From positions 2,294,001 to 2,358,000 of the forward strand of contig JANHCV010000001.1 in NCBI GenBank assembly GCA_025594325.1: a stretch of 64,000 nt of DNA, read 5' to 3'. The position numbers were made by a program, and so were the translations under genes. Positions 2,954-24,597 of this stretch are shown here, piece by piece. The notes under the pieces were generated by a model. That model saw only the letters and a list, made by a program, of their open reading frames with translations. It did not search any database and was not told the DNA's origin. This stretch comes from Blastocladiella emersonii ATCC 22665 (Eukaryota; Fungi; Blastocladiomycota). Position 1 is the stretch's first letter, and every line of letters begins with the position of its first letter.

Positions 2954-3076
2954 GGGCGCGACGCGGCGGGGCCATGGCGTGTTTGTGTGTTTCTTTGAAT
3001 GTATCGCAAAGGGCTTTTATTTATGAGCAGGAGGCGGGAGAGAGACTACTATCAGTTGCAAGCGACGGCGGACGGT

Positions 3077-4552
3077 TCAGATGCGGCACTTCTTGAGCAT
3101 CTTCTCCATCTCGTCAAAATCATCTGGCATTCCCTCGATGGTGAGCGAGTACTGGCGGATGACGAGGTTCTGGACGTCGCGGGCCTGGGGCGAGTCGATA
3201 AAGTTGACCGAGACGCCCTCGCGGCCGAACCGGCCGGTGCGCCCAATGCGGTGCATGTACGCCTCGTGGTCGGGCCGGTTGTTCTGGTCGACGGGCATGT
3301 CGTAGTTGACGACGAGGTTGACCTGGGGCACGTCGATACCGCGCGCGAGCACGTTGGTCGCGATCAGCACCTTGGCGCGGCCGGACCGGAACGCGTCCAT
3401 GGTCTGGTCGCGCACCGACGGCTCGTCCTCGCCTGTGATGACCGACACGGCGTGGCCCTCGTCGGTCATGCGCTTGGCGACGTCGCGCGCCGTGACCTTG
3501 CGCTGCACGAAGATGATGGACTGGCCGACGGTCAGCAGGCCGTACAAGTCCGACAGCTTCTGGAACTTTTCCGCGGGCGACGCGATGTCGACGTAGAACT
3601 GGTGGATGGCCTTGACGTTAACCTCGTCGCGCGGCAGCATGAGCAGGTTGGCGCCGGGCGCAAAGGACGCGGCAAACGACTTGACCTTGTCGGGGAACGT
3701 GGCCGAGAACAGCAGGACCTGCACGTCGTTGCGGACAAACTTGCGCAGCATGCGCGACTGCTCGCCGAGGTTCTGCTGGTCGAGCATGGCGTCGGCCTCG
3801 TCGAGGACCATGACCTTGATGGCCGACACGTCGAGCTGCTTGCGGCGGATCAGGTCGACGAGCGTGCCAGGGGTGCCGACGACGATCGGGTCCGTGACGC
3901 GCTGGCCGCGCGCGACGCCGTCCTTGACGGCCATGCACACGGTGGCGCCCGTGTGCACGCCGAGGAGCTTGACGACCTCGACGATCTGGATGGCGAGCTC
4001 GCGCGTGTTGGCGAGGCAGATGGCCTGCGGCGCGCGCTGCTGCGTGTTGATGCGCGTCAGCATGGTCAGCACGAAGGCGGCCGTCTTGCCCGTGCCGGAC
4101 CGCGACTGCGCGATCATGTTGACTGGCGGGTTCTTGAGCAGCAGCGGCAGCGCCTTCTTCTGGATCACGGACGGCGCGTTGAAGTTGGCGTCGTAGATGC
4201 CCTTGAGCAGCGGCTCCGGCAGACTCAGGTCCTCGAACTTGTGCGCCACCTCGATCGGGCCCGTGCTGCCGTTCGCCAGCGTCACCACGATCTCGTCCGT
4301 CGAGAAGTCCTCGTGCAGACCGGGGCCGAGCGCGGGCGCACCGGAGCCGGCGGCCTCGTCGTCCTCCTCTTCCTCCTCGTCCGACGACTCCTCGGCGGCG
4401 TCAGCGGCAGCGGCCTCCTCCGTGGCGGCCTCGGGCTTGGCCTCCGCCTTGGCCTCGGCCTCGTTCACCTTGGCGGCGACGGCGGCGAGGACCGGGTCGG
4501 GCTTGGCCGCGGGGGCGGGCGAGGCGGCGGCCTTGGGACTAGCGGGCGCCAT
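3077..4552 (-). CDS. DBP5: DEAD-box RNA helicase, Dbp5/DDX19 family, copy A (intronless, divergent N-terminus)
   Basis: Motifs NMIAQSRSGTGKT, LDEAD, FSAT, ARGID, YMHRIGRTGRFGR; 'NPPVNMIAQS' and 'TNVLARGID' are Dbp5-type. ATG at 4550-4552. Confidence 0.9.
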   Translation of the reverse strand: MAPASPKAAASPAPAAKPDPVLAAVAAKVNEAEAKAEAKPEAATEEAAAADAAEESSDEEEEEDDEAAGSGAPALGPGLHEDFSTDEIVVTLANGSTGPIEVAHKFEDLSLPEPLLKGIYDANFNAPSVIQKKALPLLLKNPPVNMIAQSRSGTGKTAAFVLTMLTRINTQQRAPQAICLANTRELAIQIVEVVKLLGVHTGATVCMAVKDGVARGQRVTDPIVVGTPGTLVDLIRRKQLDVSAIKVMVLDEADAMLDQQNLGEQSRMLRKFVRNDVQVLLFSATFPDKVKSFAASFAPGANLLMLPRDEVNVKAIHQFYVDIASPAEKFQKLSDLYGLLTVGQSIIFVQRKVTARDVAKRMTDEGHAVSVITGEDEPSVRDQTMDAFRSGRAKVLIATNVLARGIDVPQVNLVVNYDMPVDQNNRPDHEAYMHRIGRTGRFGREGVSVNFIDSPQARDVQNLVIRQYSLTIEGMPDDFDEMEKMLKKCRI

Positions 4553-4939
4553 GCTGCGATCGGAGGGAGATCGCAAGACGCGCGGAGGTTGTCAGAGACA
4601 CCGTCATGGCTGATACATGGTCTTCGTAGCGTATTGCAGCGACTTACATGATGCAGAGGCGAGGAGCAAGGGATATCTGGAGAAGCTCGGAGCAGCCTGG
4701 GAAGCGCGAGGATCAGGTCGGCCAACCTGCCAATCGAGTCAGCTGAGCCACTCGCCTTCACGCGACGCGTCGCGACGCGCTCCGCCGCGGCTTTGCCGGC
4801 CGATGCTGAGAGCGATCATTTCGCTGGCCTCCTGCAAAGGGGAAGAGGGGCAAAAGCGAAGCTGATGCAGTCCATGAATCGCGGATCAACGCTGGTTCTG
4901 CTCAACCCCTGAAAACGATCGGCGACCCTCGTGCCCACC

Positions 4940-7900
4940 ATGTCGCAGGCCACCGACATTGTCAAACTCGCCGAGCACCTCAAGATCCTGGTGCCCTACG
5001 GCGCGCAGGTCCTGGCGTCGCTCGGCAACATCCGCCATGCCGCCACGATGCCATCGAACAAGTCGGGCGCGCCGCCCCTGGCCGCACCGCCGTCGCTCCG
5101 CCTCTTCCGCGAACCGGCGCTGCTGACGGTGGCCAAGGCGTTCACAAAAAAGTTCCCCGAGACCGAGGCCATGAACAAACAGTCCAAGGAGTACAAGGAG
5201 TTTGTCGAGGCGTTCAAGGAGATCAAGGAGGAGCTGCGGCCCATCTACCTCGTCTTCTCGGCGTGGGCCGACTTTGTGGGCCATGCGCGGGCGACGCTCA
5301 CCGCGTGCGCCAAGTTGACGTGTCTCTCGGTGTGTGTTCCGCTCTCGATCGAACTGCGCGATCCGATCTAACGCGTCGTGTCGAATGTAGCTCGATACGA
5401 ACCCGGACCTCGCCCAGAACGTCGTCTTCCTCGCGCACTACCTGGTCGCGACGCTGCAGCTCGTGGCCAAGATCGGCAAGGGTAAGAAGGCCATCGCGTC
5501 GGCCGTCATTGTGCTCGACGCGCGCACCGGCGTCGTCCTCGACTCGTCCTTTTCCAAGATCGCCGAGCTGTTCGTCGCGCTCGACAAGCCCTACTCGTTC
5601 ATCCCCGAGGTGTTTGCGCCCATCAGCGCTCGTCTGACCCAGCTGCTTGGCGGGCTCAAGATCGAGATGTCGTCGGGCCCGCTCGCGCCCGTCGAGACGC
5701 TGCGCAAGTCGGGGCTCTTTGGGCTCGTCGGCATGGCGTGCGCCGACCCGACCGCGCCGACGCCCGACGATATTGTACGCTGCTGGCTTTCTAACGTTCT
5801 GGACCTCCATCTGACGCGTTTCTCGCGTGTGTAGCGACTCCGCCTCATCACGCACATGTCGCTCTACTCGCAGAGCATCGTCACCATCATGTTTGCGTGC
5901 GCGGCCGACGTGGTCAACGATAGCAACGCCATCACGCTGCTCAAGATGGCCATCAGCAACGGCACCTACAGCGGGACCACGGGCGACGACGTACGTTGAG
6001 CCGCGACAGTGTAAGCCCGTCGGACTGACCAAGATCGCGTTCGCGTCGATTACAGGTCATTCAAGCGGCGCAAGAGTTCGAGGCCCTCATCAAGTCGAAC
6101 GCCAAGCTGAGCAAGCTCAAGAGCCAGGTCACGTACGTTGTCCCTCGTCGCACCAGCATCATGTCACGGCGAGCTGACCCAAACTTGATGTAGCGAGGCC
6201 GTCGGCAAGTACAAGCAAATGTCCATCAAGTTCCACCGCGAGCGCCGCGAGTACCTCGCGCACCAGATGACGCAGATCCTGCTCCTCTGCCGCGATAACC
6301 CCGGCCTACTCGGACCAAAGTTCCCGCTCATTCTCGGCTGTCTCGTACGTTCTTCGCGGCGGCGGCAAACGGACCAAGCTGACGTTACTTACGCTCGCAC
6401 TCGTAGAACTTTGCGCGCGACGAGATCATGCACTACTTCACGCACCTCGACGACAACAAGCCCGCTCCCGGGTCCAAATCGAGCGGCGGCAGCAGTGGCA
6501 GCAAGAATGCTCCCGCGCCGCGCATGGGGCTCGACGTCCTGCACCTCCTCCACCTGACGCTAGCCATCAAGGGTCTGGTGCTGTCCAACCGCGACCTCGT
6601 GATGCGGTACCAGTGCAACCTCGTCGGCCAGTCCTTCTCAGGCAGCGTGCTCTCTGCTCTCTCGACGCTCATCTCGCAGGAAGCCCTCCCCGACGGCGTG
6701 CGCCAGCTCGCGCTCGCCGTCAAGGCGCTGTACGAGCAGGCGGACCTGGACCACCTCGACCACTACCGCGCGTTCCGCATGAACTGGGCGCGGCTGCAGG
6801 TGTACCTTTCGCTGCCCGAGTGCATGGTCCCGATTACGTCGCTGCCGCAGGTGACGCGCACGCTCAACGAGGTGGCCGCCGCGACTACGCTGATCGACGA
6901 CCTGCCCAAGCTCGTGGCCATGGTCTCGGACATGCAGCAGCTCGCGCGTCACCACGACACGCTGCTCGCGCACATCACCGAGGCCATGACCGCGTCCGCC
7001 GGCGCGCCGTCCATGGCGATCCTCGACCTCATCGGCCCGCTCGCCAACGAGCTCGCGGCGGGGAACCAGCCCGACCGCGCGGCCGAGTTCGCGATCGCGG
7101 CCATCGAGCGGCTTGCGGCCGTCACGGTCGACGTGGTGCTGCGCCACGCGCACCTCAAGGCCAAGCTCGAGCGCAAGGCTAAGTGGGATGGCATGGTGAT
7201 GAAGGGCGGCAAGGGCGTTCCGGGTGAGGTGTTCACGGGCGAGGAGAGTCTGCTGAGCTCGGGCAACGTGACGTGCCGGCACCTCGACGCGCTCGGGACG
7301 CAGTCGAGCGACATGCTCGCGGCCTTTGCCACGATGCCGTCGATCAGCAACGCGCACTTCACGCTGCACCCGCAGACGCAGCTGCAGCAGGCGCTCAGCC
7401 GCGAGGTGCACGCGTACCTGCAGTCGAGCGTGTTCGACGCCGAGGCCAACGCGGCGCCCGCGATCGGCGACGACATGCCGTACGCAATCCACACGCCGGC
7501 CATGATCCAGGTCGCCGCCGAGGCCGTGTTCGCGGACCTGTACGAGCAGCTCGCCGTGATCCCCGGGTTCCCGACCGCCGCCATGCTCGACACGGTCCTC
7601 CAGCAGCAGAACCACCCGGGCCAGGTCGCCGAGTTCTCGGAGCCGCTGCCTGAGCAGCTCCTGGTCCGCCCGCCCGCGTCGCCGACCAAGCGCAAGCCCG
7701 GCCCGCCGCGCACCCCGCCCGCGCACCTCCCGTACGCCGTCGCCGTCGGACACTACTACGCGGACCTGCTCACGGCGCGCACCTGGACCTCGGGCCTCGT
7801 GTACTCGGCCGCGCGCCAGGCGCTCGTCCACGCGCCCGCCGCGGGGCCGCACCATGCGCACCACAAGTCCTCGTCGACGGCGTCGTCGGGCGCGGGCGGA

Positions 7901-9171
7901 AACGCGAAAGACGGGCTGCACGCGTGGCGCGCCGACATCTACACGGACCCGCCGCAGCTGTCGGCGCTCGCGCGCGTCGTCGGCCCGCCCGGGATGCGCC
8001 TGATCGACGCGCGCATGATCCCGTACATAACCGCGATCGGGACCGGGCTCATCAACCAGGTCAACGGCGTGCTCGGGACGCTCGCGAGCGCGGGCCCGCC
8101 GGCCAACCTCGCGGCGAACGTCGCTAAACTCCGCGCGGCCGCCGGCGACGACCCGCTCGAGCGGCTCGCGGCGCTCGGGTACATTCTCGAGGCACGGCAC
8201 GTCGTGCACCGCGCGGCGCGCGGGAGCTTCGTGGTCCACGACGCGCCGACAAATCGCACGCTGGATTCGGCGTGCCGCGCGGCTGCGGCGGTCGCGGCCG
8301 GCGGTCAGGCCGAGGAGAACAAACCGGCGGTACGGGATTCTGGTTCGTGGCGGACTCTTTCACTGACGTGATGTCCATGTAGGGCATGTTCGAGTACGCC
8401 GAGTGGCTCAGTCACGACGAGTTCTCGGACGCGCCGCTGGACCAGGCGTTTGATTTCATCAGTACGCCGACGCTCACCGTCTACGGCGTGAGCGAGCGCT
8501 GACGGCCATCGCGTAGAGCACCTCAACGTGACGCCGGTCGGGATCCCGACGCTCGTCTCGTTCCTCGCCACGGCGCTGTGCGCTGCCGCTTTCTCCGATT
8601 CGGGCGCGTACAACGCGGCGATTGAAGGTACGCCGCCCCTCCCCTACTCCGAGACCACAGCCACTGACCACTCTTGCCCGCGCGCCCAGCGAGCCACAAC
8701 AACGCGCACTGCATCGCGACCGCGGTCCACGCGGTCCTGCTGCTCGGCCTGCCGAAACTCTCGGCCGTGGCGTCGAAGCAAGACGTGATGGGCGTGGCCG
8801 AGTCCGTGTTCGCCATGGCCAGCGGCTGGATGCTCCAGCTGCACCGCGTGCACATGGCCGCGGCCACGGGCGGCGACGGCGCCGCCGCGGCCAAGTCGCT
8901 CAAGCTGCGCGACGTGGATTCGGCGTGGATGGTCGTGCATCGCGTACGTTTCGCTTCTTCTCGGGGGTCGTCGGCTTGGCTGATACGTGTGAGCGTGTAG
9001 CTCGCGAAACTGTTCGGCGCGACCGGCGAGCGGTGGGCCGAGCACTACATCGGCCTCGGGCTCGTCAAGTCGGTCCACGCGGCCGTCGTCCGCAAGACAG
9101 TCCAGTACCGCCGCCGCCGCGTCGGCGGAGGCGGCAGCCGCGGGCACCTCGTGGACGATGACGCCGAGTGA
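4940..9171 (+). CDS. NCKAP1: NCKAP1/Nap1/Hem family subunit of the WAVE (SCAR) regulatory complex, multi-exon
   Basis: KLAEHLKIL (human KLAEKLTIL); FHRERREYL..DNPGLLGPK..DEIMHY (human MHRERRKFL..DQPGLLGPK..DEIIWL); YNAAIE..HNNAHCIATAV (human YSPAIEGHCNNIHCLAKAI). Several short introns; stop TGA at 9169-9171. Confidence 0.85.
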
Positions 9172-9950
9172 GATGGGCGCCGAGTGGTGTCTCGTTGTTG
9201 TTTGTGCCTCGGCACCAATTGATCTTTGACTTGATCCCGTCCGCGTGCACATTTCTCTCCGAAGCCGCGTGCTTGCGTCTCAGGTCGACGCCGAGCACCA
9301 CTCGCGCACGCGTCGCGTTTCAGATCACGCGAGTGGAGCCGGCGAAACTCGCGTCCCGGGCCCGGGCGCCTGGCCCTCACGGTGAGGCCGCCGCCGGTGT
9401 TCGCCATGATGGCCATGGCCACGGACAAGTGGAAAGCTTGTGGCCACGACCACCGGTTCGCGCGTTAGACGACAAAGTTTGAGGCAAAAAGGTGGAGATC
9501 CATGTTCCTACATCGCATCATCAGCGGCCACACGAGGAGGGGATGAGGGCGGTATGTCGAAGGGAAGCCCACCGCGTCTCAAGAAAACGCGAGGCGCGGT
9601 GGACGAGCGAGGGGAGGGCGGAGTCATATGGTACAGGGTTCGCACAAGTACGAGCGCGATGAGTGGGGAGTAAGTGTGAAGTGGGCGGCGATGGGAGCAA
9701 GCAGGAACGTGGGGCTAAGGTAAGGTTAGGGTGAGGTGAGGTGAGGTAGGGGTGAGGTGGGGGTGCGGGGAATGCAAGCGAGCATCTATCTACAACTGCG
9801 TCGCCACGGCGCGGACGAGCGGGTGGCGATACAGTGGGTGGTGGTGGTGGGGTGGTGGGGTGGTGGAAGCTGACGGCGAGCGGCCAGAGACGCGGCGCGA
9901 TCACCGTCAACGAGCGAGGGTGGGATGGCGAAAGGGAGGGAGAAAAACGC

Positions 9951-11957
9951 TCACAGGGAGCTGGTCGAGGCGTGGTGGACGGGGAAGTGGTGGGGCAGGT
10001 TGGCGAACATCTTGGGGTGCGCGTTCGCCGTCGCCGCGGGCGCGGTCATGTGCATGGGCGCGAGCTGCTGGAGCGGCTGCTGCGGCTGCGACGAGACGAT
10101 GAGCGGGAGCATCTGGGCGGTCGGGCCGGAGGGGATGGCGTTGTAGAGCTGCTGCGAGTCCATGCCGGGCGTCGTGGTGGTGGCGACGGGGAACGCGGTG
10201 GCGCTGTTGGGCGCGACCATGCCGAAGTTGGCGCCGTTGGGCGGGGCGAACGGCTGCACGCCGTGGAGCTGGGTCGGGTGCTGCGGCGGCGTCAGCTGTT
10301 GCTGCTGGAGCTGCTGCTGCATCATGACGGGGGCGGCGGCGGGATCGTCGTAGCCGAGCGACATGCCGGCGAGCTGCGGCGGGAGGAACGAGAGCGACCC
10401 GGACCGCGCGCGCTCGGGCGCAACGACGCTCATAGAGTTGGTGCGGTGGCGCGCCTGCGGGCCGACGAGCGGCGACGGCGCGGTCCCGGCCATGCCGTAC
10501 TGGACCGAGTTGGTGCGCGGGCGGCCGGCGTACGGCTGGAACCGCGGCGACCCGAGCGGCGCCATGGCCGACGCGCCCGGCAGGATCATGGGCGAGGTCG
10601 GGGCCGACGGGGCGGGCGTCAGGAGCGACGCGGCGCTCGACGCGAACTGCGCGCCGACCATGCCCTGCGGCATCAGCGGGGCCGCCGACGCCATCGGGAA
10701 CCCCATGGCGGCGGCATTTTCGGCGGCGCGCTTGGCGTGCACGCTCGCGATCTCCTCCTTGAGCCGCTCGGCGAGCAGCGCCTTGCGACCCGTGGCCTGG
10801 CGGCCGCGCTGGCGCAGCAGGTCCTTGAGCTCGGACACGGTGATGTCGTTGAAATCGACGCGCAGGAGCGCGTCGTCGAGGGCGCGCTCGACCTCGCTCG
10901 TCGACGCGCGCGGCACGGGCGCGAGGAGGGCCTTGCCGCCCTGCTGCGAGTCGGTCATGGACTGGAAGTTACTGCTGACCGAGCGCAGCGACGAGGCCGA
11001 GGACACGGACGACAGCGACGAGATGGACGCCATGGAGTGCAGCGACGCGAACGACGGCGCGTTCTCGAGCGTGTGGCCCATGGCGGGACTCGACATGGCC
11101 ATGGTCATGGCAGGCATCGGCTGGTACACCGGGGCGACAGGCTGCTGGAGGGCCGGGGCCGAGTAGGTCGCGGTGTCGGCGGGGAAAGCGTTGGGCAGCG
11201 TGCTTGTGGCGAGGCCGTTGGACAGCATGAAGGCCTCGGCGGCGCTCTCGAAGGTGAGCATCACGTCCTTGGGCGGGACCGGCGGCGGCGCGATGGCGTC
11301 GGTCGTCGCGGTACTGGACGCGGCGGCGGCAGCAAAGTCCTCGGGGAGCTGGAAGCTCGACGAGAGGGTCAGACCGAGACTCTCGCGGATCACGGTGCGG
11401 TCGCCGAGAGTGCGGCGCTCGCGGCGCAGCGTGCCGGGCGCGGGCGGCGGCTGCAGCACGGGGACGGGCGGGTCGATGACCAGGGTCGAGTCCATGGCGA
11501 AGCCCGACGCGATCGAGTCGAAGCTGGACTGGTGCTGAAGCTGCTGCGGCTGCTGCTGCTGGTGGTGGTCGAGCGACATGGACGAGGCGAGGTCCATGAC
11601 GTCCGAGCCCGTACCCGATGCGGGCGGCGGCGACAGGTGCAGCGCGTCCTCCCAAGCCATGCGGGTGAACGACGCGGGCGGAGCGGCGTGCGCGTCGGCG
11701 GCCGGCGCGGGGACGGGCGCCAAGCCACTTGCGGCGGCATGATGATGGAGAAAGTGCTCGGGCAGAGGCGGCACGGGCGGCGGCGCTACAGGAAGCGAGA
11801 GAGCAACGCGACGGTCAGCGCGCGCATGGGATCGAGCGGCGGCAGAGGAGGGAGGGCGATCCGTACCGTCCAGCAAGAGCTCCTGGCCGGGGAAAAGGGC
11901 CTTGCTCGGCGACGGCAGCGGCGGGAACTGCTGGGCAGTCGGCGTGACGATGCGCAT
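9951..11957 (-). CDS. SAP-domain protein, otherwise low-complexity (P/S/A/Q-rich); ends uncertain
   Basis: DITVSELKDLLRQRGRQATGRKALLAERLKE matches the SAP DNA-binding motif. Start could be 11957 (MRIVTP) or further upstream. A possible 3' intron (GTGAGC donor near 9954, acceptor near 9870) could extend the C-terminus. Confidence 0.7.
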   Translation of the reverse strand: MRIVTPTAQQFPPLPSPSKALFPGQELLLDGTDRPPSSAAARSHARADRRVALSLPVAPPPVPPLPEHFLHHHAAASGLAPVPAPAADAHAAPPASFTRMAWEDALHLSPPPASGTGSDVMDLASSMSLDHHQQQQPQQLQHQSSFDSIASGFAMDSTLVIDPPVPVLQPPPAPGTLRRERRTLGDRTVIRESLGLTLSSSFQLPEDFAAAAASSTATTDAIAPPPVPPKDVMLTFESAAEAFMLSNGLATSTLPNAFPADTATYSAPALQQPVAPVYQPMPAMTMAMSSPAMGHTLENAPSFASLHSMASISSLSSVSSASSLRSVSSNFQSMTDSQQGGKALLAPVPRASTSEVERALDDALLRVDFNDITVSELKDLLRQRGRQATGRKALLAERLKEEIASVHAKRAAENAAAMGFPMASAAPLMPQGMVGAQFASSAASLLTPAPSAPTSPMILPGASAMAPLGSPRFQPYAGRPRTNSVQYGMAGTAPSPLVGPQARHRTNSMSVVAPERARSGSLSFLPPQLAGMSLGYDDPAAAPVMMQQQLQQQQLTPPQHPTQLHGVQPFAPPNGANFGMVAPNSATAFPVATTTTPGMDSQQLYNAIPSGPTAQMLPLIVSSQPQQPLQQLAPMHMTAPAATANAHPKMFANLPHHFPVHHASTSSL

Positions 11958-14704: not shown

Positions 14705-15034
14705 TGATTCCCTAGTCCATTGGCGGCCGTGGTCTGAGCGCTGATGCGACGATATATCTGTCCATTCTCAAGGAGGTCCATGCCCGCTGCTCCATCGGTG
14801 ATCGTGGTCTGAGCGCTGAGGAGTTGATGGCCATGGTGGGTGGTGGTGCCCTTCGAGCGAGGCCGCGAGGGGACGACGGGGCGTCGCACAGCAGCGGGCC
14901 AGCTGGCCGGAACCGCTGATCCCTCAACTCCTCCCCTTCCCTCCCTCACCCCGCACAAGACTCTTGCGAAAATTAATCCACACTTTCTGCAACGCATCAA
15001 CGAACCTGCAACCGACGCACCTCTGCCCGCCGCC

Positions 15035-16209
15035 ATGTCGACCGCGAACCCGAGCAACCCGCCATCACACGGCGCTTCCGCCTCGCAGACGACGCAGTTC
15101 AAGGCGCCCCCGCCGATGCGCAAGGCCAACGCTGCCGCCGCGCGGCCACCATCTACAGTGGCAGCGAGCGGAAACGATGCAGCGCCAAAGGAGCGGTCGT
15201 GGTCGCTGCACGACTTTGACATTGGCAAGCCGCTCGGCAAGGGCAAGTTCGGCCGCGTGTACATGGCGCGCGAGAAGCAGAGCGGGTACATTGTCGCGCT
15301 CAAGATCCTCGTCAAGGAGGAGCTGCAGAAGGAGCGCGTCGAGAACCAGCTGCGCCGCGAGATTGAGATTCAGAGCAACCTGCGGTACGGAGCATCCGGG
15401 TGCTGTCTAGGCGGTGCGGAACGTGCCGGCTGACTCGGGGAGCGTGCGCACTTTGTAGCCACCCCAACATCCTGCGGTTGTACGGCTACTTCTACGACTC
15501 GAAGCGCGTGTACCTGATCCTCGAGTACGCGTCCAAGGGCGAGCTGTACAAGCTGCTCAAGGAGGAGGGCACGTTCGACGTGGTGGCGGCGGCGCGGTAC
15601 ACGGCGCAGCTCGCCAACGCGCTGCTGTACCTGCACTTCAAGAACGTGATCCACCGCGACATGAAGCCCGAGAACATTCTGCTGACGGCCAACGGCACCA
15701 TCAAGCTGTCCGATTTCGGGTGGTCGGTGCACGCGCCCAACTCGCGGCGCACCACGCTGTGCGGGACCATGGACTACCTGTCGCCCGAGGTCGCCGAGAG
15801 CCGGCCGCACGACGCGGCCGTCGACCGGTGGTCGCTCGGCATCCTCCTGTACGAGTTCCTCACGGGCATGCCGCCGTTCGAGGAGAAGTCGCACACGGCC
15901 ACGTTCAAGCGCATCTCGCACGTCGACCTCAAGATCCCCGCCTCGGTCGACCCGCTCGCCGCCGACCTCATCAACAAGCTCCTCGTCCGCGAACCCTCCA
16001 AACGCCTCATGCTCCACGAGGTCCTCGAGCACCCGTTCCTCACCACCTACTGCCCCGACACTCTCGCCGACCTCTACCAGCCCTCGGCGCTCGTCCAGCA
16101 CCTCCGCTCGCTCCGCGGCACCTCTGACGCGGCCGCGGCGAGTGCGAGTTCGAGCTCCGCTATGGCCGTCGACAGCGACAGCGCGTCGGCGACCGCGGTC
16201 GCGCCTTGA
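15035..16209 (+). CDS. IPL1: Aurora kinase (Ipl1/Ark1)
   Basis: [86 protein letters not shown]. Intron 15385-15458. Confidence 0.95.
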
Positions 16210-16459
16210 CGGGCCGAGCGCGCCAGTACTTGAAAAACATGATCTTCCTTTTTGCGTTCAACCTCTGGGTCCTGCTGCCGTACGAGGTGACGAACGCGGC
16301 CGGTGGCCGGCCCCTCCACTGCGCCTCTCTTCGGCTCCCTCTCCCATTCCATGAGGCTGCCAGTCGTGGATGTAACTGAATGCAACTGAATGCAAGGTAA
16401 ATGTGACCTCAGAAACAACGCTATGGAATGATTCTTACCGGCGAGCGGACCCGTGCCAG

Positions 16460-17529
16460 ATGCCCATCGTGCACGGCCTGAACATTTTCATCGAGGTGAA
16501 CGGCATCAAGGCCGAGGAGTACAAGGTTGCGACGACGACCCGCGACGACGGCGTTCTCGAGACCCGCTGCGCCATCGAGAGCATCAGCGGCGCCCGGTTC
16601 GGCGCAACCGCGACCAACTTCGGCCATGTCTACCGCGACGTGTGCGCCATGCTCGTCGTCGACGGCAAGCCGACGTTGATTACGAGCTCGTTCCTCTCAG
16701 CGCGCCCCAACGTTCTCGATTTTGCCATCAACTACGGCTCCAAAAAGGTCCCGCTCGTCTTTGCGCCGATGCGCCCCGTCGCTGAGGATGAGCAAGTGGA
16801 TGAACTGGACAAGACGCTGATCAGCAACGACGAGCTGGACGGCGTCGGCCAGATCCGCGTCGAGATCTGGACGGGGCAGCAGCAGGAGTCTCGGCAGACA
16901 ACGACAAACAACCGCAAGCAGGTCATTCTTACCGAGAAGCAGAAGAAGGCGGCCCAGGTCACGCATACGACAAGGTACGGTTCGCTGACTGACCCGCGAA
17001 TTGGCGGACAAACACTAACTGATTGGTGCACTGCAGCTACGGCGAACCCTTCGCCCATTACAGCCGTCCGACCATGATCATGGTGCCCAAGAAGCTGCTC
17101 CACAGCTTCATCTTCGATTACATGAGCCGCGGTACGTTTTCGTTGCCACGTTTCGAGCAAGTACAGTGCTGACCTCGTCCGCGCTTCGGATTAGACATGC
17201 TCGAGGTCCGCAAGTACATTGACACACCCGACGTGACGGCGACCACGCTCGACGTGCCCTCATTGTCCTCGGCCTCGGCGGCTCGAGTCAAGCCCGAGCG
17301 CGGCACGACGCAGTTCATCGACCTCACTGGGCTCGGCAGCGGCGACTCGAGCGCGCACAAGCGCCGCCGCACGAACGAAGGACCGGTCGGTCCGACGCCC
17401 GTCGTCCACCTCGACGACAGCGACGACGAGGAAACCTCGCGTGCGCCGCGCAAGCTGCCCGTCAAGTCGGAGCCGTTGTCCACCGCCAACTCGACCGTGA
17501 TCAGCCTTCTCAGCGACGATGACGATTGA
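16460..17529 (+). CDS. Uncharacterised tandem-array protein, copy 1 (DUF7918-like)
   Basis: Three exons with GT-AG introns after 16974 and after 'DYMSR'. Family motifs EEY..RCAIES.SG, GQIRVEIW, LTEKQKKAA..THT, FIFDYMSR|DML. Confidence 0.8.
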
Positions 17530-17830
17530 GATTCATCGAGGAAACAGAAGCTTTGGTGCCTGTCGCCGCTAGCCCAATATCATATAATTCATCATCGCCG
17601 AAATGCCTGTCGACTCCGTGGACGCGCTGCGCCACACCATGCCGATCAGCTGAGCCGTGGGCTGATTCCCTCATTTTGAAGCCCCCACCTCGTCGCCGAC
17701 ATCGCCTCTCCCGACCCACACACAGTTCATTTCAGAGCTGAATGTAACTTGATGCAAGGTAAACACTGAAGCTATTATGTCACATTGGAAGCACCGCGGA
17801 GACTAAATGCGGGTTGCGGCACGGCGGCAG

Positions 17831-18904
17831 ATGCCCGTGATTGACAGCTTGAAGGTCTTCGTCGAGGTGAACGGCACCAAGGCCGAGGAGTACAAGGTCG
17901 AGACGACGACCCGCGACGACGGCGTTCTCGAGACCCGCTGCGCCATCGAAAGCATCGCCGGTGCTCCCTTTGGTGCACATGTTTCGAACGTGGGACACGT
18001 CTACCGAAACGTTTGCGCGGTGCTCTACGTCGATGGCAAGTCGACGCTAATCACCAACAACTTCCTAAACTCAACGCCGAACATTATGAATGACGCCATC
18101 CAGTACGGTCCGGGCGGCGCGAAGCGAGCCCCGCTGCTCTTCGCAGTGATGAAGCCAGTTGCCGAGGGCGACGTCGTCAATGATCCAAACCAGACGCTGA
18201 TTGACAACGACGCACTTGACGGCGTCGGTCAGATCCGCGTTGAGATTTGGACCGGTCGGCAGGAAGAGCGACGGGTTGGGTCGTCCTCGTCCTCGTCCAG
18301 TCCACACCGTCAGGTTGTCTTGACCGAGAAGCAGAAGAAGGCTGCTCTTGTCACGCACACGGCGGCGTAGGTTCTTGTTCCTCTGTCGCCCGCGTAGCAA
18401 AAGCTGACTCCTATTCGCTTCCAGATACGGCGCGCCATCCCGCGACTACGTGCCGAGTCGGAAAAGGATGTACAAGCAGAAGCTGATGCACGTCTTTATT
18501 TTCGACTACATGAGCCGCGGTACGCTCTTCTCAAGCGCTTTTGCGAGCACTGCTGACCTCGGAAATTGCGAGTAGACATGCTTGAGGTGCGCAAGTACAT
18601 CGCGACGCCCGACATCACGTCGACCGCGCTTGCCGCTTCCACCCCGACGTCCCCGCCGCCCAAGGTCAAGCCCGAGCGCGGCGCGACGCAAGTGATCGAC
18701 CTGAGCGGCGGCGATGGCGACTCGGCTGTCAGCAAGCGCCGCCGCCCGAACGAGGGACCCGTTCGCCCGACGCCCGTCGTCTACCTCGACGACAGCGACG
18801 ACGAGGAAACCTCGCGGGCGCCGCGCAAGCTGCCCGTCAAGTCGGAGCCGTCGTCCACCGCCAACTCGACCGTGATCAGCCTTCTCAGCGACGATGACGA
18901 GTGA
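17831..18904 (+). CDS. Uncharacterised tandem-array protein, copy 2
   Basis: Same exon structure and motifs as copy 1, with near-identical nucleotide blocks shared with copy 1. Confidence 0.8.
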
Positions 18905-19222
18905 ACCGGTTCGCATAGCTATGAGGTGACGTGTTGTTTACCCTCGAGTTTCTGTATCGTCTAATTTGTACATTCTCTCTCCTGGAGCCGCTGGTGCTTG
19001 AAGACGTTTGACGCGAAGGTGAACTTCGCGTTGAGCGCGTCCACGGTGAACCGGGTGACTCACGGGTGACTCCTTCGCGACCAGCGCTTCTCCTCTCCTC
19101 CCTTCGCTCTCATCGTCGTGATTGATAGCGTGTTGAGCCCGAATGTAACCGCATGCAAGGTAGCTGAATTATGAGCACAAGCACTGAGAACGAGTCCTGA
19201 CTGCTGAACCGCCGCCGTGCAG

Positions 19223-20312
19223 ATGCCTACGAACCACGGCATCCGCGTCGTCGTTGAGGTGGCCGGCGTCGAGGCCGAGGAGTACAAGGTCAAGACGACG
19301 ATGCGCGAGGACGGCGTCCGAGCAACCCGCTGCGCCATCGAGAGCATCAGCGGCGCCCAGCTCGGTGTGCATGTCTCGCGGGTGGGGTCCGGCTACGGCA
19401 AGAAAGTCGTTGCCGAACTCATTGTCGATGGCGAGTGCACGCTGATCACGAACAGCTACATTACCGCGGATCCAACTACGATGGACTTTGCCGTCCAGCC
19501 CACCGAGGATGGCGCAAAGCGGGTTCCGCTTCTCTTCGCCCCGATGCAGCCCGTTGCCGAGGAATCGGCAGTCGGCGACCCCGGCCAGCGGCTCGTCGAC
19601 AATGGCGCACTGGATCGAGTCGGTCAGATCCACGTCGAGATTTGGACTGCGCGCAGTGCGCCTGAAGCGCGCCGACACTCTCGGGACCAAGATGCCGACT
19701 TCGACTCGCTGAACACGCAACGCCAGGCCATCCTCACCGAGAAGCAGAAGAAGTCGGCGCTCGTGACGCACACGGTTGGGTACGTGGATCTTTGTTCGTT
19801 GTTTCGCACTGAGAAGCTCAACTGACGGATTCCTGTAGCTACGGCCCGCCGATCGAGGATTTCGTTGCGGGGCAGCCCAAGGTGCGCAGAGTCAAGCTCA
19901 TCCACGTTTTCGTCTTCGACTACCTGAGTCGCGGCACGCCCGTCATGCTCATCGCTGCGCGTGAACTGTACTGACGCCGTGACTAGACATGCTCGAGGTC
20001 CACGGCTACATTCCCGCGGCGCCCGGTGCTACGTCCGCGTCAACTTCGAGCGCCGCTGACCCCGAGCGCGACGACGCGTCCCGCGAACTCATCGACGTCA
20101 AGAGCGAGGCCAACCCGCACGCGAACAAGCGTCACCACCCGAACAAGGAGTCCATCCGCACGCCGTCGGTCGTGTACCTCGACGACAGCGACGACGAGGA
20201 GGAGGAGTCGCGTGCGCCGCGCAAGCTGCCCGTCAAGTCGGAGCCCTCGTCCTCGTCGAGCACCACCAAGTCGACCGTGATCACCCTGCTCAACAGCGAC
20301 GATGAGGAGTGA
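19223..20312 (+). CDS. Uncharacterised tandem-array protein, copy 3
   Basis: EEY..TRCAIESISG, GQIHVEIW, ILTEKQKKSALVTHT, VFDYLSR|DML, acidic terminus VITLLNSDDEE. Confidence 0.8.
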
Positions 20313-20564
20313 GTCGGTGTATGATTTGTGTCGTTCACGTCGGGCTCGATGAAGCCTGGCCGAGTATCGTTTGATATACCTCTGATTTGGAGACGTTTTG
20401 ACCCGCCGCGGAGACGCGTTGTTCATCCGGTAACGAGCCACGTGCCGTCAGGTCGCGCGGCGCAGCACGCGTTTCGCATGGGTCGCGCGTACGCACGCCA
20501 ACAGCTCCTCCTGGCAAGGAAGGCCTTGAATGCAACACCCACTTGAAGCAGACTTTACGCAAAC

Positions 20565-21733
20565 ATGCCACGCATAGATGATATTGACGCCCGAGTGGTC
20601 GTGAACGGTGTCGCTGCCGTCGAGTACAACGTCACCACGACGCGCAACGCGGACGGGACTTTTGTCACGCGCTGCGCCATTGAGGCCTCGAATGACGCCG
20701 CCTTCCACGTTTCGATCATAAACCACGACGCTGTCCGCCACCCGAACCTGATTCCGACGCTCGAAGTCGACGGGCAGCTCGCGGGGATCAAGAAGCGGTT
20801 CGTCGACGAGAAGCCGACGCTGATTCGGTCGTTCGTTCGCGGTTCCGGTGCGCTCCTCCGTTTCAGCCGCGGGGGAGCAACTGTGCACTGACGTTCGAGC
20901 GCGTCGGCAACTGCGTGTAGACAAGTTCCCGCTCCGCTTCGCGCGCATGGTCCCCGTCGAGGAGGGCGAGGAGCTCTCAAGCGACAAGGCCGTGCTCGCG
21001 TCGCACGACCAAGTCAAGTCGGTCGGCCAGCTGCGCGTGTTCCTGCGCAAGGCCATGCTGCGGCAGCGCACCCGCCCTAGCTCTTCGACGGCCACCGCGA
21101 CATATGAGCAGCCCAAGCAGCTCGTCCTGAGCGAGCGGCAGAAGAAGGCCGCGCACATCACGCACACCGTCGAGTACGTTCTCGGTGCCGTTTTCTTTCC
21201 TCTCGGTGTTGACTGACGCCATGGATCGACAGGTTTGGCGATCCCAAGACCCGTCGACCATCGCAGCTCAAGGCCAAGTATCTCGAGACGACCCACGAGT
21301 TCATTTTCGAGTACGAGAGCCGCGGTACGCTAGACCTGGTTGCCGGATGCTCCAGGCCCCACTCACCTCGCCTATCCTTCTCTCGACAGACATGCTGGAC
21401 GCCAAGGGGTACCTCGACATTGTCGAAGAAGTCGCTCAGCCTGCTGCTCCTCATCCTGTCGTCAAGCGCGAGATCAAGCGGGAGCGCGATGTCGAGGTGG
21501 CGGTCAAGTCGGAGGAGGGGTCCTCGCCGATCGCGAAGCGCCAGCGTCTCGAAGCTGCCGGCCCGCCTTCCCGCCAGGTCGTCTACCTCGAGGACAGCGA
21601 CGGTCAAGTCGACGACAACGAGTCGGTGGCAATTTCGTTCGAGCCAGCGCTGGTCCAGGCAAAGCCGCTGGTCCAGGCCAAGCCGCTGACGAGCCCACGG
21701 TTTATCAGCCTGCTGGACAGCGACGATGAGTGA
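20565..21733 (+). CDS. Uncharacterised tandem-array protein, copy 4
   Basis: VEY..TRCAIEAS, extra intron before KFPLRFA, GQLRVFL, LSERQKKAAHITHT, FIFEYESR|DML, terminus FISLLDSDDE. Confidence 0.78.
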
Positions 21734-22011
21734 ACGAACACGAATGAATGACTTTGCACACTATTGGATAGCTTTCCACTTTTGAGTGGTCGTGGACAGC
21801 TTTTGCGAGCCTCGGAGGTGTGACCGCGCGTTTTTCATGCGCACGTGGGATCGCTGCAAGTTGGGGACTTGTTGGCGGGGCCTCTCCCGTTTCCCTTACT
21901 CACCAGGGTCCCCTTTGCACGACTGAATTAGTGCGCATCCCATTCCCTAACAACCTGCAATGAATTACTTATGAATGCATGGATCCCCTGCGGAACAAGC
22001 AGTGAAGCGCG

Positions 22012-23142
22012 ATGCCGGCGGTCGACGACTTCAACGTTCAGCTGTTCATCGCGGGCGAGGCCGCCAAAGAGTACGGCCTCACCGTTACCGAAGTCGAAAA
22101 TGGGATCACGGAGGTGCGCTGTGCTGTCGAATGCGTGACCGGTGCCGAGTTTTGGTGCCAGGCCGCATTCTTGGGGCGTGGCCGTTCGGAGCGCGTCGCC
22201 GACCTCCGCGTGGATGGCCGCTTCATGATGGGTACCGGCGATTTCCTCAACAGGAAGCCAGCGCACCTCAATTATGCGCGGATGAGAGGCGGTACGCGCT
22301 GCTCTCCGCTCTTTAATTTGGATGCAAATTCACACTCGACGACGCAGAGAAGTTCCCGCTGCGCTTCGCACCGCTTCGTGCCGTCCCAGTTGGCGAGGAG
22401 CCCGACGAGACCGAGGACGTGGTCGTTGCCGAAAAGGAGGACGTCAAGAACGTGGGCACGATTTGCGTCGAGCTCTCCTTCGCGCGGATCGTGGGCCGCA
22501 ACCGGAACGAGGACCGCCGCCGCGAAATGTCCTCGAAAGTCGTCCTCGCCGAGATCCAGAACAAGGACGCCAAGCTGACGCACACGGCCGAGTGCGCATC
22601 TCGTTCCTTTCCCCGGCAATTGACGCTGATCGTTTGTGCGATTGGTAGGGTGGGAAAATCCCTGGGCAAGACAAAGCCGTGCAAGGACCAGTGGGAGCTC
22701 ATGGACATCAGCCATCGCTTCGCTTTCGAGTATATGTCGCGCGGTACGGTACTTCGTGACAAGTCGGGGTTCCGGTGTGACCTGTGCTTCACAATTTACT
22801 CGTGTAGACATGCTCGAGGTCAAGGGCTACCTGCCGACCCGCGGTGGCAGCAGCTCCATCAAGCGCGAGCGCCCAAGCAGTCCCGAGCAGGTCTCGGGCG
22901 CGGTGGGCCCGAAACGGCCGCGGTATGCTGCTCCCGCTGTGCAGCCCACGTTCGAGGTCATCGAGCTGCTTGACAGCGACGAAGCGGACGCCACGGTTGT
23001 GGTCAAACCGGAGTCGTTCGGCCGTTCTCCTGCTCGAGTCGTCAAGAAGGAGCCGCAGGGCCAGCGACTGCCCGTGGCGCCTCGTCAGCTGCCGACGTTT
23101 GAGACCATCGACCTCATGGACCACGACGACGATGATAAGTAG
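22012..23142 (+). CDS. Uncharacterised tandem-array protein, copy 5
   Basis: KEY..EVRCAVECVTG, |EKFPLRFA, GTICVEL, NKDAKLTHT, FAFEYMSR|DML, terminus TIDLMDHDDDDK. Confidence 0.78.
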
Positions 23143-23426
23143 CATGGATTTGAAATGTATGAAACTTCACTTTGCTTACTCTGTGTACTTCCTTGTCACC
23201 AGCGAAGAGACGCGACTAGCGGCGGTCAACGGATATACGCGTTGTTCAGGCGCACGTGTGGTCGGCGCCACCACCACTGCCCCAGCAACGACATCAGGAC
23301 GTCGCCGCTCGTTCCCTCAACCTCTCTCCATCACGCTTAGCGAGTGCGTCATTCGCCCACCCAACCTACTGCAATGTTTATCTCATGCAATCATGTCCCC
23401 ACTGCTGCGCAGTAGACCGATCCGCG

Positions 23427-24597
23427 ATGCCGACCGCGAACGACTTTCGCGTGAAGCTGCTCGTCGAAGGCGTGCCTGCCGAGGAGTACGGCGTGACGGT
23501 CGATCACCTCGAGAACGATATCACCGAAGTACACTGCGCCGTCGAGTGTGTCACGGGCGCCCAGTTTGCGTGCGAAATCAGCTATCTCGGCCGCGGCCAC
23601 TCGAATCGCGTCGCCGACTTGCTCGTGGACGGCAAGTTCATGGAGGGGACCGCGTACTTTATCGACGATGAGCCCGCTGTGCTCGAGAATGCGCTCATTG
23701 GAGACGGTACCCCCCGCGATGCGGCTTCTCGCGACTTTGCGCAGACTGACTGACGCGCGTTCCCTCGTATGCATAGAAAAGTTCCCGTTGCGGTTCGCCG
23801 CGATGCGCGCTGTCCCGATCGGCGAGGATCCCGACGAGGACGACGTGGAGGTCGCGGACACGGAGCAGGTCAAGGACGTGGGCCGCATCTGCGTCCAGCT
23901 CTCATACGCGCGCGTGCTTGGACCTGCCCGGAACCAGCAGCGCGGTATCGAGCACTTCTCCAAGGTCGTCCTAACGGAGCTGCAGAACAAGAACGCTAAG
24001 CTCACGCACACCGCCGAGTACTGCTCCTGCTTGTCTTCCGGAGATCTGTGTGACCACTAACCAACGCGTGTAGGGCCGGGGAATCGCTGGGCCAGTGGAA
24101 GAAATCCGACGTCGAGTGGGAGGTCCAGGAGCTCACGCACCGGTTCATTTTCGAGTACATGTCGCGCGGTACGGGTTTCGCGCGGACCTCGAGCGCCACG
24201 CAAAGTAACACGGCCGCACCTCCGCTGTGTAGACATGCTCGACATCAAGGGCTACCTGTCGTCTCGATCTGGCAGCAACTCGAACAAGCGCGGTCGAGCC
24301 GGTGAACCTGTCGACCTGACCATGGTCAAGGACGAGCGCGCGCCGAAACGGCCGCGCCTCGATGATCCGCCGGTGCAGCCCACGTACGAGGTCGTCGAGC
24401 TTCTCGACAGCTCCGACGACGAGGACGAGGACGAGGACGACGATGTGGTTGAAGTTTCTCCCGCCACCGGCGCAAGCGGAACCGGTGCGGTGACCGTCAA
24501 GAAGGAGACGGCCACGAGCCAGCGACCGCTGATGCAGCCCCTGCCGCCGCCAACGTTTGAGACAGTCGTCCTGCTAGACGACGACGATGACGAGTAA
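23427..24597 (+). CDS. Uncharacterised tandem-array protein, copy 6
   Basis: EEY..EVHCAVECVTG, |EKFPLRFA, GRICVQL, NKNAKLTHT, FIFEYMSR|DML, terminus TVVLLDDDDDE. Confidence 0.78.

Follow-up and report, generated by a model that had tools for sequence, protein, structure and literature searches.

The array at 16460-24597 of the 64 kb window of Blastocladiella emersonii ATCC 22665 (the window being the whole stretch of DNA analysed) is composed of six plus-strand genes with products of 314 to 326 amino acids: copy 1 (16460-17529, 314 aa; exons 16460-16974, 17037-17131 and 17195-17529), copy 2 (17831-18904, 319 aa; exons 17831-18366, 18425-18519 and 18576-18904), copy 3 (19223-20312, 325 aa; exons 19223-19779, 19839-19933 and 19987-20312), copy 4 (20565-21733, 321 aa; exons 20565-20841, 20921-21173, 21233-21324 and 21390-21733), copy 5 (22012-23142, 317 aa; exons 22012-22291, 22348-22591, 22649-22743 and 22808-23142) and copy 6 (23427-24597, 326 aa; exons 23427-23706, 23777-24017, 24074-24168 and 24233-24597). 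Each gene has two or three short introns of 53 to 79 nt, and the introns of the array carry branch-like CTGAC or CTAAC sites. Copy 4 has an additional intron within the domain, and intron 2 of copy 3 has a GC in place of the GT donor (GCACGC at 19934). Once spliced, all six frames are open, as the first-pass annotation of this DNA had claimed in speaking of six intact copies. The motif GAATGYAAC is found four times on the plus strand of the 64 kb (0.38 matches expected), at 16378-16386, 17740-17748, 19141-19149 and 20528-20536, in all four cases 5' of copies 1 to 4 and 37 to 91 nt from the ATG. The GC content of the array is 61%, that of the flanks 65-72%.

The public gene models at the locus are corrected here for four of the six copies. 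The model of copy 6 is 100% identical to the NCBI protein H9P43_000857 (P0005). In the NCBI annotation copy 1 is joined to an upstream Aurora-like kinase in a 654 aa product, copy 2 (H9P43_000854) is a 211 aa protein which skips half of the domain, copy 3 (H9P43_000855) uses an alternative intron of 26 nt, and copies 4 and 5 form a single fused product of 631 aa.

The six proteins belong to the family DUF7918 (PF25534; profile HMM gathering cut-off 27 bits), which the first-pass annotation had named and which the profile search bears out. Exon 1 alone scores 38.6 bits for copy 1, 39.7 for copy 2 and 38.9 for copy 3, and at full length copy 3 (H9P43_000855) reaches 44.5 bits and copy 6 reaches 42.4 bits; the match of the array proteins spans almost the entire model. 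For copies 4 and 5 the exons were scored separately, and each piece lies below the cut-off (24 plus 16.8 and 13.9 plus 16.1 bits, respectively); both align with the remaining copies column by column. In a Pfam search of the full-length proteins DUF7918 is the sole domain, with no RING, B-box, coiled-coil, SP-RING, SAP or PINIT. The family is large among fungi, as a single ESM Atlas cluster of DUF7918 already counts 4188 members, and no paper naming it is present in the searchable literature. Members from Ascomycota and Basidiomycota agree with the array proteins in total length and in the layout of a head followed by a tail. The Blastocladiomycota members are distant, with 38 to 58 bits compared to 211 for an ascomycete member. 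Since the Pfam model stops at about residue 215-230, the tail is outside its description.

Each array protein is predicted to consist of an all-beta sandwich of about 215 residues and a disordered acidic tail of about 110 residues. In the AlphaFold model of copy 6, residues 1-215 have a pLDDT above 90 and the tail is for the most part below 50. This model and that of the paralogue P0006 both give a confident all-beta sandwich with the same strand order, in line with the beta-rich N-terminal domain proposed earlier, and a disordered, undocked tail with a pLDDT of 40-60. At the end of copy 6, in its final 16 residues, the pLDDT reaches 64 and 56, compared to 40-50 just before; DSSP assigns no strand beyond residue 210 in either model. 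In the ESM Atlas the closest shape match, aligned over 205 residues, is to a DUF7918 cluster (TM 0.70 by target); none of the solved structures searched is convincingly like the domain, the top hits (Z up to 5.0) being generic Ig-like domains. The isoelectric point of the heads ranges from 4.6 to 9.4, which is not uniformly basic and argues against a DNA-binding factor; that of the tails is 4.1-5.2.

The tails carry short motifs in a fixed order: at least one psi-K-x-E site, a basic cluster, an internal hydrophobic core with a Ser/Asp/Glu run, another psi-K-x-E and, at the very C-terminus, a further hydrophobic core with an acidic run. In copy 1, whose tail is encoded by the last exon, these are VKPE, FIDLT, KRRR, VVHLDDSDDEE, VKSE and the C-terminal VISLLSDDDD, and copy 2 has the same layout. 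The tail of copy 4 carries VKRE, IKRE, VKSE, KRQR, VVYLEDSD and the C-terminal FISLLDSDDE, that of copy 5 IKRE, KRPR, FEVIELLDSDE, VKPE, VKKE and the C-terminal FETIDLMDHDDDDK, and that of copy 6 VKDE, KRPR, YEVVELLDSSDDE, VKKE and the C-terminal FETVVLLDDDDDE. Scoring SIM cores as [VIL][VIL]x[VIL] or its reverse within a disordered region (consensus per PMC9371903), each tail has two to four cores with an acidic flank and two or three psi-K-x-E sites. The flanks, such as DDSDDEE, SDDDE, DSDDE and DDDDDE, follow the cores directly, on the C-terminal side. The joint occurrence of psi-K-x-[ED], a SIM core with acidic flank and K[KR]x[KR] was reached in none of 5000 composition-preserving shuffles of any copy's tail. 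All tail motifs quoted in the first-pass annotation are found in the copies, with some amendments to its description. A K[KR]x[KR] cluster, the putative basic NLS, is present in five copies and absent from copy 3; the ending in a SIM and an acidic stretch fails for copy 5, where a final K follows the acidic run. Nor are the tails very different in sequence, since those of copies 1 to 3 align well and, across all six, the islands of motifs can be aligned column by column.

The same motifs are found well beyond the array. Of 42 homologues from outside B. emersonii, 20 have a PIAS-type SIM core, psi-psi-[DES]-psi-[TSDLFM], among their final 12 residues, where the density of the core elsewhere in the proteins predicts 0.4 (p about 7e-30, a value which overstates independence because the homologues are kin). 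These homologues represent five phyla or major lineages (Catenaria, Hyaloraphidium, Borealophlyctis, Basidiomycota and Ascomycota), and the family consensus of 22 to 25 aligned homologues ends in VIDLTxD. Across 22 distant homologues the tails contain 32 psi-K-x-E sites and 24 K[KR]x[KR] clusters, where 3.3 and 3.7 would be expected; their domains have only 5 and 4. The motif order of the Catenaria tail is that of B. emersonii. Other fungi have just one VIDLT, at the terminus, where Blastocladiomycota tails have two or three SIM-like cores that read V-V/I-S/Y-L-L/D with a run of S, D or E. The grammar of SUMO site, SIM and basic cluster is thus family-wide and not peculiar to the array; since distant homologues in other phyla keep it, it withstands what the first-pass annotation had given as a ground for refutation, namely a grammar not conserved in homologues. 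The DUF7918 family as a whole carries a disordered tail with what are, by sequence, the marks of SUMO binding and SUMO receipt.

Comparison with known SUMO-linked proteins shows similarities confined to the tail. VIDLT is the SIM of PIAS1 (PMC4907222), and the same core is present in the DUF7918 consensus and in copies 1 and 2 (FIDLT, VIDLS), in both cases with an acidic or serine flank on the C-terminal side and in a disordered region (PMC4907222, PMC9371903), as is usual for SIMs of the consensus [VIL][VIL]x[VIL], which have acidic or phospho-serine flanks (PMC9371903). The PIAS proteins, however, are E3 ligases of the SP-RING class that also contain SAP and PINIT domains, none of which Pfam finds in the array proteins. 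Daxx carries a SIM close to its C-terminal end which is phosphorylated by CK2 at serines 737 and 739 (PMC9371903), comparable to the C-terminal VISLLSDDDE of the array. It also has consensus lysines and is nuclear, but this animal protein is a helical chaperone of histone H3.3 with no kinship in sequence or fold to the DUF7918 sandwich. Several SIM-type cores in a single disordered stretch are found in the multi-SIM SUMO-targeted ubiquitin ligases RNF4 and Slx5 and in PML, and in PML they are combined with SUMO-acceptor lysines, as they are with putative ones in the array tails (PMC3901395, PMC9371903). A SUMO-targeted ubiquitin ligase of the RNF4/Slx5 type finds no support in Pfam, there being no RING beside the SIMs, and neither does a nuclear body scaffold of the PML/TRIM type, as there is no RING, B-box or coiled-coil and the models contain the beta sandwich and disordered tail only. 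There is thus no basis for ligase activity or PML-type scaffolding, and the PML-like self-assembly suggested earlier remains speculative.

We give an even chance to the reading of the array proteins as nuclear SUMO-docking adaptors or clients. In the mechanism we infer, the basic cluster would direct nuclear entry, two or three SIM-type cores would dock onto SUMO on other proteins, the adjacent consensus lysines would become SUMO-modified with the SIMs assisting, and the beta sandwich would bind a partner differing among paralogues; any biological role is likewise presumptive. As the acidic and serine flanks lie C-terminal of the cores and resemble CK2 sites, we propose that parallel binding would be favoured and that phospho-regulation may occur. 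Against this reading count the missing basic cluster of copy 3 and the fact that short motifs within acidic disordered tails can have other readers.

The alternative which survives best, though we consider it rather unlikely, is such a reader: the conserved tail motifs would be real but act as an acidic-hydrophobic region for transcription activation, as an Atg8-interacting (LIR) motif or as an acidic sorting cluster under CK2 control. Acidic tails with hydrophobic islands do resemble activation domains, both cores of copies 5 and 6 are headed by an aromatic residue in a pattern (F/Y-E-V/T-I/V) that fits [WFY]xx[LIV], and the S-D-D-E runs match CK2 sites. However, the family-wide form, V/I-I/V-D-L-T followed by acidic residues, is the PIAS1 SIM (PMC4907222) and unlike a LIR core, and the folded domain is not uniformly basic. 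The motif moreover co-occurs with psi-K-x-E lysines enriched tenfold, and the two together point to the SUMO system specifically. It is improbable that the C-terminal hydrophobic strand is instead a ligand of the DUF7918 sandwich itself, added to it as an edge strand, either in cis, for auto-inhibition, or in trans, forming chains joined head to tail. Motif and domain always occur together, SIM-type motifs bind as beta strands (PMC9371903) and the pLDDT of copy 6 rises slightly at its end; yet the tail is undocked and strandless in both models, with a pLDDT below 65, and the enriched psi-K-x-E sites are left unexplained.

A second DUF7918 row of four copies lies on the opposite strand, 15.4 kb ahead of the start of the window and 32 kb upstream of copy 1; two of its copies are intact, one is a pseudogene and one has a mutated splice donor. 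In other fungi the same head-plus-tail architecture is encoded by a single- or low-copy gene. The array is best explained as a lineage-specific tandem expansion of a pan-fungal family, with six copies here and four upstream. For the closest pairs the domain has a dN/dS of 0.28-0.45, with dS saturated at about 1; by these estimates the copies are old and the domain is under purifying selection, which indicates that the copies are functional genes. The 3' coding tract of copy 1 (17374-17529, plus strand) shows 96-98% sliding DNA identity to 18749-18904 of copy 2, and identity drops to about 45% immediately past the stop codon. In this tract, which spans the middle and C-terminal SIM-like motifs, dS is 0.03, compared to about 1.0 elsewhere in the pair. 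The near-identical 3' ends look like the result of gene conversion, and among copies 1 to 3 the conservation of the tails partly reflects gene conversion instead of selection.

The first-pass annotation took the locus for a possible system of nuclear surveillance or defence undergoing diversification, with variable heads for varied targets and tails coupling to SUMO bodies. In its favour, the organisation is tandem and multi-copy with birth and death of copies, the latter seen in the second row, and the heads, with about 33% identity between subfamilies, differ more than the tail motifs. The selection on the domain is, however, purifying and not diversifying, no defence-type domains or neighbours were found, and other fungi keep the architecture in single or low copy. 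The defence reading, more exciting but unsupported, is thereby removed, and we regard it as very improbable. Least probable of all is that the array is decaying or silent DNA with functionless frames and motifs: its lower GC, the broken second-row copies and the GC donor of copy 3 would fit, but all six frames are intact, dS being about 1 and dN/dS well under 1, splice sites and the upstream motif are kept at copies 1 to 4, and the tail motifs are kept across phyla.

Returning to the SUMO adaptor reading, the terminal SIM-type motif, the SUMO consensus lysines and the basic cluster together provide a concrete and cheaply testable hypothesis for the whole DUF7918 family, for which the Blastocladiella rows offer natural head and tail variants. 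In its widest form, to which we attach only a small probability, DUF7918 would be an unrecognised pan-fungal class of SUMO-dependent nuclear adaptors, in which the sandwich picks the client and the tail with its SIMs and SUMO sites joins SUMO assemblies, and the tails of the ten Blastocladiella copies might pair with different SUMO paralogues.

The array at 16460-24597 of the plus strand is composed of six units placed head-to-tail, as seen in the ORF map and in the sequence: copies 1 (16460-17529), 2 (17831-18904), 3 (19223-20312), 4 (20565-21733), 5 (22012-23142) and 6 (23427-24597). Word-index and exhaustive protein searches recovered the products of the array itself, under NCBI names of Blastocladiella emersonii ATCC 22665. 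The array lies on the 5.14 Mb contig JANHCV010000001.1 and has a GC content of 60.6-61.5% (16001-24000), 4-10 points lower than the 65-72% of the flanking 2-kb bins. The units were spliced by hand at GT/GC-AG sites which recur at homologous positions across the copies, the splice sites being set by paralogue comparison only. All six spliced units are open frames of 314-326 amino acids, and the copies can be regarded as intact, as the first-pass annotation had held. Two introns are present in copies 1-3 and a third one, inside the domain, in copies 4-6; they measure 53-79 nt, with branch sites resembling CTGAC/CTAAC. In copy 3, intron 2 (19934-19986, plus strand) starts with GCACGC, where all the paralogues have GTACG, and would be either a GC-AG intron or else a recent splice defect.

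The public gene models across the array (window 14840-24597, corresponding to 1609-11171 of the locus L002 which covers it) are wrong in 4/6. Copy 1 is joined to the upstream Aurora-like kinase in a model of 654 aa, copy 2 is shortened to 211 aa with half the domain skipped, copy 3 has ten extra residues and an implausible 26-nt intron which avoids the GC donor, and copies 4 and 5 appear as one fusion product of 631 aa. For copy 6 alone is the public model (H9P43_000857) the same as the hand-spliced one.

The element GAATGYAAC has four matches in the 64-kb window (0.38 expected), all on the plus strand. They are found at 16378, 17740, 19141 and 20528, each 37-91 nt upstream of the start codon of one of copies 1-4 and nowhere else in the window, so that each of these copies has kept its own upstream element. 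In copies 1-3 the sequence GCAAG/GTA is found just after GAATGYAAC, and CAG directly before the ATG; this arrangement would be consistent with an intron in the 5' leader which ends at the start codon.

The six genes are new members of the catalogued family DUF7918 (Pfam PF25534), whose domain the N-terminal part had been said to resemble in the first-pass annotation. Exon 1 of copies 1-3 and the full-length proteins of copies 3 and 6 score above the Pfam cut-off of 27 bits. Copies 4 and 5, scanned against Pfam as separate exons only, align throughout with the other copies. The Pfam model ends at about residue 215-230, and the tail is outside it. Through the B. emersonii paralogue P0006 we reached a second row of four units, located on the opposite strand 15.4 kb before window position 1 (L001:8351-13821, JANHCV010000001.1 2273094-2278564). 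A frameshift and an in-frame TGA make its first unit a pseudogene, and the next two units are intact. In the last unit the spliced frame is open, but GAATGT is found where intron 2 should have its GT donor. All units of this row fall in the same subfamily as copies 1-3. As an exhaustive HMMER search gave no further B. emersonii members beyond the two rows, these probably constitute the whole family in this genome.

In the maximum-likelihood tree the Blastocladiomycota members form one group (support 100/99). It contains a species-specific clade made up of copies 1-3 and the second row (96/97), and a pair of sisters, copies 5 and 6 (100/100); how this pair, copy 4 and the group of Catenaria and B. 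britannica branch relative to one another is left unsettled by the tree. Five Basidiomycota proteins (P0011, P0013, P0019, P0023 and P0033) are annotated with two DUF7918 units each, and in P0023 both units are closed by VIDLT plus acid. Here the annotation has probably joined two tandem genes into one, and tandem duplication of the family would thus recur outside Blastocladiella.

AlphaFold models were made for copy 6 and for P0006, with 22-25 homologues in each alignment. Both show the same beta sandwich of about 13 strands with two short helices, at a pLDDT above 90 over residues 1-215, and in both the tail is without secondary structure (pLDDT 40-60); docking of the tail on the domain was seen in neither of the two models. 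Foldseek against the PDB (E <= 0.001) gave no match to the head, and searching PDB sequences with a profile yielded nothing credible, with a single spurious match at E = 0.03. The highest Z of the exhaustive wide search with VIA-align was 5.0, for a mixed set of Ig-like, MSP and glycosidase (GH2) sandwich domains; these are not credited as relatives, since this value is below the level at which it would mean more than a common arrangement. The sole clear shape match to the head is the DUF7918 cluster of the ESM Atlas. The idea of a DNA-binding head was rejected on the pI of the domain, which spans 4.6-9.4, a variation in charge that speaks against conserved binding of nucleic acids.

In the tails the motifs quoted in the first-pass annotation are all present. 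For each tail we counted psi-K-x-[ED] sites, hydrophobic cores flanked on one side by three or more acidic residues, and basic clusters of the type K[KR]x[KR], and compared the counts with 5000 shuffles of the same tail keeping its composition. The joint counts were reached in 0/5000 shuffles for every copy; copy 3 is without the basic cluster. The order of the aligned motif islands is fixed: psi-K-x-E, basic cluster, internal core with a run of S/D/E, second psi-K-x-E, and terminal core with an acidic run. The tails share a common origin and are not a case of convergence.

Loss of this grammar in homologues had been named beforehand as the result which would overturn the proposal; the homologues show the reverse. 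Word-index searches with full-length and domain-only profiles gave six proteins each, since few exact words are common to the family and the acidic tails swamped the candidates; the homologue sample comes for this reason mainly from one exhaustive HMMER search, with 42 hits from Catenaria anguillulae, B. britannica, Hyaloraphidium curvatum, Borealophlyctis nickersoniae, Basidiomycota and Ascomycota. The distant tails were delimited from the alignment and the terminal core was scored in the last 12 residues. In the alignment of 22 sequences the consensus C-terminal end is VIDLTxD, and a psi-psi-[DES]-psi-[TSDLFM] core is found in the last 12 residues of 20/42 non-B. emersonii proteins. From the core density elsewhere in the same proteins 0.4 would be expected (binomial p ~7e-30, this and the other homologue p-values being optimistic because the sequences are related). 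Proteins without the terminal core are mostly fragments or mis-modelled. The 22 homologue tails contain 32 psi-K-x-E sites, mostly VKRE, versus 3.3 expected from shuffling (12 being the most seen among 2000 shuffles), and 24 K[KR]x[KR] clusters versus 3.7 expected, while the domains of the same homologues, three times longer than the tails, contain only five and four, respectively. As the rest of the tail cannot be aligned from one phylum to another, the motif islands are under long-term constraint, and the tail grammar proves to be shared by the DUF7918 family as a whole, beyond the B. emersonii array.

A SIM is defined as [VIL][VIL]x[VIL] in a disordered region, with acidic or CK2-phosphorylated serine flanks, the C-terminal flank favouring parallel binding (PMC9371903), a general definition which fits the DUF7918 tails. 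The SIM core of PIAS1, VIDLT (PMC4907222), is the one found in the terminal consensus of the family, and the CK2-regulated SIM of Daxx is close to the C-terminal end of that protein (PMC9371903), matching the placement of the terminal core. Reading the tail as a carrier of predicted SUMO sites, SIMs and an NLS is, at the level of sequence, well supported. LIR motifs were rejected as a family-wide reading, as they fit copies 5 and 6 only.

From the evolutionary point of view the array had been described as diversifying, which the substitution data do not bear out. Pairwise Nei-Gojobori estimates on the codon alignment, in which synonymous sites are saturated, gave a domain dN/dS of 0.28-0.29 for the closest pairs (1-2 and 5-6, dS ~1.0) and of 0.36-0.45 where copy 3 is one of the pair. 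Constraint is looser in the variable first part of the tail (0.33-0.77). Positive selection was rejected on the domain values, all below 0.5, and nothing points to diversifying selection. Copies 1 and 2 share a near-identical 3' tract (17374-17529 and 18749-18904, plus strand; DNA identity 96-98%), in which the last 43 codons have a dS of 0.03, against a value of about 1 for the remainder of the two genes; the match breaks off precisely at the stop codon, right after which identity drops to ~45%. This pattern points to gene conversion involving the 3' ends of both copies. The same pair has a second short island of 95% identity (16493-16552/17864-17923).

No support was found for a role of the array in nuclear surveillance or defence, nor for the proposed analogy to PML self-assembly. 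Literature searches found no paper mentioning "DUF7918", and nothing relevant for "Blastocladiella emersonii" combined with "SUMO". The useful outcome is a specific, testable functional hypothesis for the DUF7918 family.
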